Source: Oculina patagonica
Taxonomy: Eukaryota
Assembly (NCBI RefSeq): GCF_052425735.1
Contig: NC_135763.1
Location: 31,372,001-31,436,000, forward strand
DNA: 64,000 nucleotides
Direction: 5' to 3'
The position numbers and the translations under genes are program-made. Below the pieces are notes generated by a model that saw only the letters and a list, made by a program, of their open reading frames with translations, was not told where the DNA came from and ran no database searches. Positions 61,147-64,000 of this stretch are shown here, one piece after another (the first letter of the stretch is position 1; the number at the start of each line of letters is the position of its first letter).

Positions 61147-61690
61147 ATTTGTTCATCTTTTGACTCGAGACCCGAGACTTGATTCTCAGTCGAAATTTTC
61201 AAGTCTTGAGACACGCGGATCGTGACGCGAGGGACTTACTTTTGAGCGAACTGTGTAACGAACTTTAATCTCGCGTTTTCGTGCAAAAAAAGAAAAAAAT
61301 ACTCGTTGCATTGTTTAAACTATTGTAAAAGTGCACAGTGAGCGAGCTGCGAATGCGAAGCAACTTAGCTATCTACGGTTTAATCCGGACGGACTATATC
61401 ATTCCGACGCGAGGTAATGACATAGACCAGCACACGTCTTGAATCTTTATATGCCGTCCAAATTTGGCGTTCCTTGTGTGTGGTTATAAAAGAGTGTGAA
61501 GGAAGTTCATTCTTGGATGATAAACAAATGGAAATTGTCACACATTTTATCAAAGAAATTTAATAATAACATGAATTTATGGATAATTAACGACCACGAA
61601 ACATGGGTACACACTTCAATCGACGTGAAGTTGTCATGTTACGTTCTCTTGTTTGTGTTTAGCTGTTTGGTTTATTTCACGCGCTGTTAA

Positions 61691-62263
61691 CCCTTTGACA
61701 CCCAAATTTTCCCCAAAAAACGCTTTTTTTAACCGCTAAACTGAAATTTTGGTTTTATGGTCTTGAATTTACCTCAACTTTGCTAAAGAAGCACTTTTTT
61801 TACACTTCAGCAACATTTTGATAAAGATTCTGTGTAAAAACGTGCAATATTTTACTTTGGTGCATGCGCATAAGCCAAAATTTGGACTTGTTTTTTTTTT
61901 TTTTTTGCTGAACCGTTCCAAATTTTTTTATTCTCGTTACTTTCTACTCTTCATATCTTTCTTTTGGCCAAAAAAGTTTTGACGTTATCATTGCAAACAC
62001 TGAAAAGGGGACCTTGACCAATTACAGGTGTACTGGCCTGTTTAAGCAACGATTTTGCACCAAAAATGGATTGTGCTTTTCTTTGATTAGCTCTGTCAGA
62101 ATGCAACCGATATTCAAAATGAACAGTCTCGTAGAAAGGTCGATCCAAGCTCTGTCAGATTCTTATCACAAAATTCCACTGACGTGCTTATTGATGACGT
62201 CACAAGTGAATCAATGACTGCACCTCCAAATAGCGCCTGAATGCGCGATTAGGAGTGAAAAGG
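61691..62263. mobile_element. piggyBac-type MITE in the duplicated mTOR intron
   Basis: TTAA at 61687-61690 and 62264-62267; CCCTTT/AAAAGG termini; absent from the homologous site at ~40398. Confidence 0.7.
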
Positions 62264-62298
62264 TTAAAGTGATCAAAATATTTTTTCTTTGTTTTTAG

Positions 62299-63447
62299 AA
62301 TTCAGCGTTACGCAGTTATCCCACTGTCAACAAACTCAGGTCTGATTGGTTGGGTGCCTCGCCAGCTCACTATGACACACTCCACGCTCTTATCCGCGAC
62401 TACAGGGAAAAGAAAAAGATTCTACTTAACATCGAACATCGCATCATGCTAAGAGTACGTTCGTTAAAAGAATTCTTACTTTCTCTTTAGACTCTGTGCT
62501 CCAAACATAGAAAGTGAAATGAATATTTATTTAGTGGTAAAATCTCATCACGTAACGTAACTTTTATCGCTAGCCACGTCAGGGGAAAGGAGTTGTCAGC
62601 CACAAAACATCGGCTTAAATCAAGCCAAGACGTAACTGAAAATAAATAAATAAATAAATAAATAAATAAGATATGGTGAAAGAGGAGGGAATGTGTGTTA
62701 TAAAAATTCGCCTCCCCGTGATTTCGGTCACCCCGACAGAAGTGTAGACACTGGACTGGTGGTGATTTTGAAGGACGATGAAGTTAGATTTAATATTTCA
62801 ACACGCGCCATTGTTTACAAGACCGCGAAGAAGAAATCTTGAAAATCTTATACAGGGTACGTATACGAAGGATATCATTGAATTCAAAGGCTCGATAGTA
62901 TTTTACTCGCCTTTCCTTAAAACTAGTTAACACGCTATTGTGTCTTACCGTTTGTCTTTTATTTTTGACCAATCAGATGGCACCAGACTATGATCATCTG
63001 ACTCTAATGCAGAAAGTGGAGGTGTTTGAACATGCGCTGTCCAACACTAATGGCGATGACCTGGCTAAATTGCTATGGCTTAAAAGTCCTAGCTCGGAGG
63101 TAAAAAAAAACCGTGAAATAAACGCATGTCCCTTAGTTAATATCGGGATTGATAACCTGAAATCTAAAAGAACAATTTACGGACAGGTGTATTGCAGTTT
63201 TACCTAAGGCGATAGTACAGGCTTACCACTCTGTAAATACTGTATTTCCTCAGAAAAAGCAATCCTTCAAAAAAAATCCACCCTTTAGTGAAAATATTTG
63301 CAATAATCGCCTAGGGGTTTAAACACAAACCATGTTTAATAAAGCTGTTTTGCTTTGTTTTAAGGTTTGGTTTGATCGTCGAACTAACTACACTCGATCT
63401 CTTGCTGTCATGTCCATGGTGGGATATGTGCTGGGCCTGGGAGACAG
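62299..63447 (+). pseudogene. MTOR: Partial duplicate of mTOR kinase exons (62299-62454, 62977-63099, 63365-63447); probably continues beyond the window
   Basis: Homologous to 40427-40574, 41101-41223 and 41747-41829 with intact AG/GT sites; 8-nt insertion (~62360-62367) frameshifts the first exon. Confidence 0.85.
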
Positions 63448-64000
63448 GTGAGAAAGCTCACGGTATTTCCTCGAGCATTATTTTACTTTGCGCGCTATAC
63501 TGTAGGCTAACAACGCAAGCCAAGATATCTTAAATTTAACGGAAAGTTTTTTGCCATACTTTATTAAATACAGATATAACAATAGACAATACAAGATAGC
63601 CTACCATAGTTATATTTACAATACTATCTAATGAAATCAATAATTATATTTAGCAATTTTGTATTTAGCTATGGAACTTATTGCAAGTAGATATAATAAT
63701 CTTAAGTAATTAAAACGTTTGCTCTCACATTAATATCAATATCACTTTTTTGAAACAATATTATTTTTATCAGAATTTACAAAAAATGTTCTGTTTTACA
63801 TTTAGGGTACATTCGTCAATAACTACCATAAAAACCTGTTCAAAGACCTACCACAATAATGAGAAAAGACAAATTAATCTAGGTTTTTAAACCTTAGTTA
63901 ACAACAATATTTAATATTTCTATGGCGGAAATTAACATAGGAATATGATCAATTGTGCCTGGTTACATGAAGTGTACAAAGAAGGCACTCCACCCTCTGT

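Follow-up and report, generated by a model that had tools for sequence, protein, structure and literature searches.

How can a second set of mTOR kinase exons, lacking the front part of the gene, have kept the substitution pattern of protein-coding sequence? mTOR is an extremely conserved growth regulator and is almost universally single-copy. The question was raised by a 64,000-nt stretch of the Oculina patagonica genome (C6:31372001-31436000 of a 529-Mb assembly; referred to here as the window), in which the initial annotation had noted that the sequence from 61147 on copies an mTOR intron and three kinase exons. For the present analysis, the window was extended downstream by 40 kb (C6:31436001-31476000). 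Positions in this extension, marked ext, continue the window numbering and equal the C6 position minus 31372000. The exons and duplication units described below are on the plus strand, except for the exons of the neighbouring gene, which are on the minus strand.

Results

A tandem segmental duplication carries the 3' third of mTOR

When the window was compared with itself by BLAST, the segments 61146-61413, 61505-61688, 62268-63143, and 63139-63455 matched 39786-41837 in order, with 75-88% identity. The copied intron and three exons were thus recovered in collinear arrangement, and the copy proved to be larger than had been noticed, as it contains all of the 11 remaining mTOR exons. Past the window end, collinear homology to 43589-58803 continued in the fetched 40 kb. 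The arrangement is a tandem direct segmental duplication, in which unit 1 occupies 39786-61146 and unit 2 extends from 61146 to approximately ext 76640, about 12.6 kb beyond the window end. The unit length is approximately 21 kb, and the second unit is at present approximately 15.5 kb long. In the extended-sequence comparison, 39786-58803 was collinear with ext 61146-73872; the post-gap sequence 59027-61122 was collinear with ext 74143-76639, with an identity of 79-87%. This old duplication carried the 3' third of mTOR, namely 11 coding exons and the 3'UTR, together with exons of a convergent EGF/PAN neighbour.

Up to an assembly gap, unit 1 (39786-58806) consists of intron sequence, the parent exons E1-E11, the 3'UTR, and minus-strand neighbour exons. 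The gap (58807-59026) is a run of 220 N inside unit 1. Its flanks, 58803 and 59027, correspond to ext 73872 and ext 74143 in unit 2, where they are approximately 270 nt apart, and the gap is therefore too small to hide an mTOR head or lost exons. The last part of the unit 1 tail (59027-61146) is an incomplete version (60902-61146) of a repeated minus-strand exon, matching 49839-50083 at 84.6%. At the duplication junction (61146-61147), this repeated-exon sequence is joined to the mTOR intron sequence equivalent to 39786. The junction is 2.1 kb away from the gap, in a stretch assembled without interruption, and the tail homology between units 1 and 2 extends to 24 nt or less from it. Copies of the minus-strand convergent neighbour exons, including the EGF and PAN exon 55010-55558 and the repeated exon 49834-50338, were also observed in unit 2. 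At its right end, unit 2 is rearranged and has a second junction, pointing to a history more involved than one duplication event. In two Pocillopora species, mTOR was single and no second block was present within 10 kb downstream; the duplication is therefore lineage-specific.

The copy retains all remaining coding exons

The last mTOR exon before the breakpoint (39638-39773) matches Pocillopora mTOR residues 2093-2142 (C6:31411628-31411777). It is followed by a GT donor at 39774-39775 and ends two bases into a codon (phase 2). On the parent side, the left breakpoint is at 39786, inside the mTOR intron and 12-13 nt past this donor, in agreement with the distance of about 13 nt estimated earlier. 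The parent exons E1-E11 (40427-47646, stop included) have splice sites and a continuous frame. They are located at 40427-40574, 41101-41223, 41747-41829, and 43816-43888 (E1-E4), at 44014-44088, 44678-44813, 45852-45911, and 46218-46292 (E5-E8), and at 46580-46660, 47446-47551, and 47631-47646 (E9-E11, the last including the stop). Human mTOR residues 2222-2270 and 2364-2388 are matched at 100% identity by parent E1 and E5, respectively.

In the copy, E1 is preceded by a version of the mTOR intron with private insertions (61147-62298), the final 31 nt or so of which, before the acceptor, are alignable to the parent. Copy E1 (62299-62454; AG/GT) is 156 nt long compared to 148 nt in the parent. 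It differs by three synonymous changes, one replacement (Cys to Tyr), and an 8-nt insertion, GCCAGCTC, at 62361-62368, which shifts the frame into a TAA stop at 62450-62452. Copy E2 (62977-63099; AG/GT) has nine synonymous and no replacement differences, and copy E3 (63365-63447; AG/GT) has two synonymous differences. An exact recount over these 354 nt agreed with the initial annotation, which had listed 14 synonymous changes, one Cys to Tyr replacement, and the 8-nt insertion, with a nine-to-zero count in the middle exon and all six splice sites kept.

Beyond the window, copy E4-E11 (C6:31436326-31438898) have AG/GT boundaries and the same phases as in the parent. E4-E7 are located at ext 64326-64398, 64520-64594, 64850-64985, and 65483-65542, and E8-E11 at ext 65611-65685, 66217-66297, 66702-66807, and 66883-66898. 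The copy thus retains every mTOR coding exon downstream of the breakpoint, 11 in total, beginning in the kinase C-lobe and ending with FATC and the same stop after CPFW. Whether the copy reaches the DFG and FATC exons had been asked when only three exons were in view; both are reached. The stop codon and 22/22 splice sites are kept, and 10/10 introns are kept and alignable. A processed pseudogene (retrocopy) is excluded by the retention of all 10 introns.

The copy translation holds the catalytic loop (DRHPSN), the DFG motif, and the terminal CPFW followed by the stop; in the sequenced genome, the activation-loop Phe is changed to Ser and a nearby Met to Ile. Once the insertion is removed, the conceptual translation shares 95.7% identity with residues 2142-2465 of Pocillopora verrucosa mTOR. 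By its orthology-level similarity and its motifs, the copy is coding sequence for the mTOR (PIKK) kinase C-lobe and FATC.

The copy is headless in the whole genome

In a search of the whole genome (529 Mb) with Pocillopora mTOR, all matches fell within C6:31360897-31437005. The genome has one set of N-terminal mTOR exons, starting at C6:31360897. A second set (HEAT, FAT, FRB, and kinase N-lobe) was found nowhere in the genome, and the copy does not belong to a complete mTOR gene. In the 40 kb after the copy, the only homologues of the sequence upstream of 39786 were dispersed repeats. Since the left breakpoint is 12-13 nt inside an intron, the copy was left without promoter, start codon, and N-terminal exons. 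It is headless in the genome and not merely in the window.

Substitutions between parent and copy carry a coding signature

The 11 exons were aligned over 324 codons with the 8-nt insertion removed. Parent and copy show 52 differences, 43 of which are at third codon positions; 43 are synonymous and nine are replacements (p = 2.5e-20 against neutrality). The resulting dS is 0.233 and dN is 0.012, with a ratio of 0.051. Approximately 88 replacements would be expected on a copy that had been neutral since birth, whereas nine were seen on both branches together. The aligned introns diverge at p = 0.215 (JC 0.25, approximately 22%), with many indels. Because dS is close to this intron divergence, the two copies have not been homogenised recently by gene conversion. 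Per-exon divergence is uneven, ranging from 2.4% to 13.3%.

Each of the two copies is 95.7% identical to Pocillopora mTOR, and the relative-rate test revealed no difference between them. The differences were polarised with two coral cDNAs as outgroups (dS approximately 1-2). Five replacements were placed on the copy (C22Y, F150S, M161I, R244K, and P245T) and two on the parent, and two were ambiguous. For the synonymous changes, the rough assignment was 20 on the parent, 13 on the copy, and 10 ambiguous; at the sites where both outgroups agreed, 11 were parent-derived and seven copy-derived. The copy's own branch has five replacements to 13 synonymous changes (5/18, compared to 78% replacements expected under neutrality; p = 8e-6). 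With outgroups so distant the synonymous polarisation is noisy; the pairwise argument, however, is independent of it.

Two controls were available in the same region. A third mTOR 3' relic (ext 77566-78149) contains a stop and is missing most exons; its remaining fragments are 78-80% identical. The duplicated exons of the neighbour gene gave a ratio near 0.3. The substitution pattern shows that, through most of the period following the duplication, strong purifying selection acted on the copy exons as on protein-coding sequence. The purifying-selection signature first described on three exons is thus stronger on all 11 (43:9, ratio 0.05), and it is also present on the branch of the copy (5:13).

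The copy is a separate locus in related species and decays in the sequenced genome

In the sequenced genome, the copy has a disabling mutation of the kind expected of an unprocessed pseudogene, namely the 8-nt insertion that leads to the stop at 62450-62452. With this frameshift, the copy module cannot yield a full-length protein there. The substitution ratio of 0.051, in the meantime, is not the neutral one of such a pseudogene. The CAG created by the insertion was considered as an alternative acceptor; by hand translation it leads to a stop within three codons, and the frame is not rescued.

Words of the copy were present in DNA runs with five organism labels from nine studies, and four runs were mapped to ext 62200-68199. 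DNA contigs of two other species labels span the copy introns and exons at approximately 98-99% identity; for example, a 733-nt contig covers intron 6, E7, intron 7, and E8 of the copy locus with nine differences. The depth over exon stretches common to both copies was approximately 167-219, about twofold that over copy-specific stretches (80-107). The copy-locus contigs in other species labels indicate that the copy is a real separate locus in several species and no assembly artefact.

At four replacement sites, the copy-locus contigs of the two other labels have the ancestral residue (Met instead of Ile, Arg-Pro instead of Lys-Thr, and Cys instead of Tyr), and they are also ancestral at two synonymous sites. 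Therefore, four or more of the five replacements derived on the copy occur only in the sequenced lineage. Near the insertion, the one informative contig begins immediately beside the 8-nt site. The private changes, at least four replacements to two synonymous changes, look neutral, whereas the older, shared history of the copy comprises approximately 11 synonymous changes to at most one replacement. These counts fit a long period of constraint and, in the sequenced species, a recent turn to decay. The suggestion in the initial annotation that translation of the module continued until recently, or continues in other alleles, is in line with the ancestral residues at the four sites.

RNA contigs of a sister species are of the parent type

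Among RNA-type Logan contigs of one sister-species run, all matched contigs were parent-type spliced mTOR, with a word depth of 36-82. They included a 2333-nt spliced contig, in which E1 lacks the 8 nt and has parent letters, and a spliced E8-E9-E10 contig, likewise with parent letters. In this run no copy-type exon contig was found, and the depth was zero in all copy intron-only bins. Furthermore, one poly(A) raw-read run contained no reads on the copy exons or the 3'UTR. The contig view covers one tissue of one species, and contigs drop rare variants, so that these results are no proof of silence.

When the protein databases were searched for copy-type residues in gene models or transcripts of the genus, the only matches were to Pocillopora, one other coral, and Nematostella, with none from the genus itself among the records searchable, and an exact look-up of the copy E2 ORF returned no record. 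JGI metagenome contigs gave zero matches for copy-type E1, with or without the insertion, and for the copy-type spliced E5-E6 junction. A literature search on partial mTOR duplication in corals gave no relevant publication.

Discussion

The evolutionary anomaly of this copy is real, and the observation is solid. What remains to be explained is how exons without a head could have been translated. We propose that mTOR has in this copy an alternative 3' module, comprising multiple exons, and that the sequenced lineage is losing it; we assign this reading a probability of roughly 45%. The first base of copy E1 is the third of a codon, and the open frame upstream of it has no start codon, so that the copy could most simply have been translated after a splice from an upstream phase-2 donor. 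As no in-frame start is present upstream and E1 is as constrained as the other exons, such a donor would have been required. By reading-frame logic, the donor at 39773 would be the most economical source; it is frame-compatible and the sole candidate identified. The module would now be disappearing from the sequenced lineage and may remain intact in sister species.

Several points speak against use of the module. Transcription would have to read through the parent terminator and approximately 13 kb with a convergent gene; no copy transcripts were among the RNA contigs and reads examined; and the frameshift bars a full-length protein in the sequenced genome. The proposal in the initial annotation that the donor could serve two alternative C-terminal kinase modules has so far gained no support: the phases, the splice sites, and the shared upstream donor are compatible with it, but copy E1 is frameshifted and the RNA contigs are of the parent type only. 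The two-module reading is plausible, and the RNA data examined gave it no support. That mTOR pre-mRNA of sister species free of the frameshift is still spliced from the 39773 donor to either 11-exon block, perhaps in a stage- or condition-specific manner, seems doubtful to us. If this were true, the genus would have two mTOR isoforms, which share HEAT, FAT, FRB, and the N-lobe and differ in the C-lobe, the regulatory linker, FATC, and the 3'UTR. Such modular kinase diversification would be undescribed for any PIKK.

The copy could instead be the remnant of a once-complete tandem mTOR paralog, from which, after long selection on both full genes, a later deletion removed the promoter and the first 45 or so exons, with decay ever since. 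Long purifying selection would then be explained without unusual splicing, the absent transcripts and the recent decay would agree with it, and the locus is prone to rearrangement, as seen from the third relic copy and the second junction at the unit 2 end. However, the tail homology reaches to within 24 nt of 61146, as expected of a duplication junction; a later deletion would have ended there only by chance. Moreover, head exons have left no trace elsewhere in the genome, and the single mTOR of the two Pocillopora species has no second block in the 10 kb downstream. We regard a lost head as unlikely.

The copy may also be, or have been, transcribed from its own promoter, for instance from a transposon in 61555-62268, giving a truncated C-lobe and FATC protein from an internal Met; the product could be a regulator or decoy, e.g., for C-lobe-binding partners. 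In-frame Met codons follow the insertion, late in E1 and early in E2, so that such an ORF escapes the frameshift, and the first 135 nt or so of the 3'UTR are approximately 91-97% identical between the copies. Nevertheless, the part of E1 upstream of these Met codons is equally constrained, which is unexpected for a 5'UTR; it has no copy-derived change except for one private replacement and the insertion. RNA depth was zero anywhere on the copy in the runs examined. Furthermore, a kinase C-lobe without the N-lobe cannot bind ATP productively, which counts against a truncated protein of this kind. Taken with both sides of the evidence, an own promoter has a low probability. Spliced-leader trans-splicing, considered as a source of the copy 5' end, was dropped because, to our knowledge, it has not been reported in anthozoans.

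Exon-restricted gene conversion from the parent, acting on a copy that was a pseudogene from birth, and a haplotype or gap-join origin had both been named as alternatives in the initial annotation, and neither is supported. The uneven per-exon divergence and the near identity of E11 and of the 3'UTR start could reflect short conversion tracts. Conversion, however, erases synonymous differences as well, and yet the dS of 0.233 is close to the intron JC value of 0.25; in addition, later changes on a dead copy should be replacements in approximately 78% of cases, whereas 9/52 were replacements overall and 5/18 on the copy branch. The gene-conversion reading is thus largely refuted and very improbable. 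An assembly artefact, in which a divergent haplotype or misjoined contig was placed after the 58807 gap, is hardly credible. Unit 1 is linked to the copy-bearing contig only via the 220-N scaffold gap. However, the assembly is continuous across the junction, and, unlike a haplotig, the DNA preceding the junction lacks collinearity with the parent. The intron divergence of approximately 22% with many indels is far above allelic variation, and the DNA of other species labels gave copy-specific contigs, with shared exon stretches at about twice the copy-specific depth. An allelic haplotig is rejected on the non-collinear upstream flank, the divergence, and the separate locus in other individuals.

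Viewed against known systems, the copy resembles an unprocessed pseudogene from a partial tandem duplication in its tandem position, its introns, its missing promoter and 5' exons, and its frameshift. It is unlike one in its ratio of 0.05 at a dS of 0.23 and in its kept splice sites and stop, and true decay is displayed by the adjacent relic. With tandem exon duplications and alternative last-exon blocks, the copy has in common tandem exons with identical phases and intact splice sites; one donor upstream is shared by the copy and parent blocks, and either block ends in a stop and 3'UTR of its own. It differs from these in being an 11-exon block of approximately 4.6 kb located 22.5 kb from the donor, past the parent terminator and a convergent gene, and splicing to either block, as in tandem alternative exons, was not seen in the RNA contigs and reads examined. 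We know of no duplication of such a terminal multi-exon block in a PIKK kinase. The yeast TOR1/TOR2 paralogs are alike in that a second TOR kinase and FATC coding sequence is under purifying selection. However, TOR1 and TOR2 each form an entire gene, with a promoter and HEAT/FAT regions of its own, whereas only the C-terminal 324 codons are duplicated here, with a single head.

The locus is a natural example of how a partial duplicate survives, with three copies, one working, one constrained, and one decayed, adjacent to each other. A headless C-lobe and FATC block under protein-level selection would mean either that mTOR has, or had, an alternative catalytic half, or that a full second mTOR was lost. 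Either outcome would add something new to TOR biology and would bear on coral growth and symbiosis signalling.

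Additional mTOR-derived sequences

Positions past the window end continue its numbering and are marked ext, and E1-E11 denote the exons of the parent mTOR portion. Beyond the end of the window, a third headless mTOR 3' relic was found at ext 77566-78149 (C6:31449566-31450149). The relic is heavily decayed. Its E7-like fragment carries a stop, its E11-like part reads 'CPIW', a 3'UTR fragment is retained, and the surviving fragments show 78-80% identity. Therefore, mTOR 3' sequence has been duplicated more than once at this locus. An isolated, degenerate E3-like fragment, which covers the catalytic-loop region at 56% amino-acid identity, was located on a different chromosome (L004 1482-1577, C4:3205007-3205102).

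Early in the mTOR 3'UTR, a block of approximately 107 nt (47672-47780 in the parent, ext 66925-67032 in the headless copy) was approximately 97% identical between parent and copy, compared with approximately 80% for the remaining 3'UTR. No such block was detectable in the mTOR 3'UTR of either of two other corals; a functional element and a short conversion tract are both possible explanations for it. The assembly has a second gap, of 162 N at 35415-35576, within mTOR and upstream of the duplicated portion.

Mobile elements and the convergent neighbour gene

A dispersed element of approximately 220 nt with an apparently tRNA-derived (SINE-like) start was present at 59507-59730, 41915-42131, 8234-8452, 13304-13498, ext 74644-74863 and ext 78265-78473, and has made private insertions within the introns of both mTOR copies. 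The reverse-transcriptase fragment at 56267-56758 (-) (PF00078, E = 1.6e-8) in unit 1 of the tandem duplication, with no counterpart in unit 2, is a private retroelement insertion.

The convergent neighbour is a gene or gene array on the (-) strand, comprising a repeated cysteine-rich exon (49834-50338), which had no match in Pfam, and an EGF + PAN exon (55010-55558). Copies of its exons were found at 60902-61146 and at ext 68556-69060, 70927-71431, 76411-76627, 90842-91344 and 95912-96570. The repeated exon copies are approximately 85% identical to one another, with a ratio between units near 0.3. At the second rearrangement junction, which ends unit 2 (ext 76627-76640), the cut repeated exon joins a PAN-exon-like fragment, having been broken off 36 nt before the cut position of the unit 1 copy. 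The repeated exon may be a breakpoint hotspot, and expansion of this exon, or of its gene array, may have driven the duplications.
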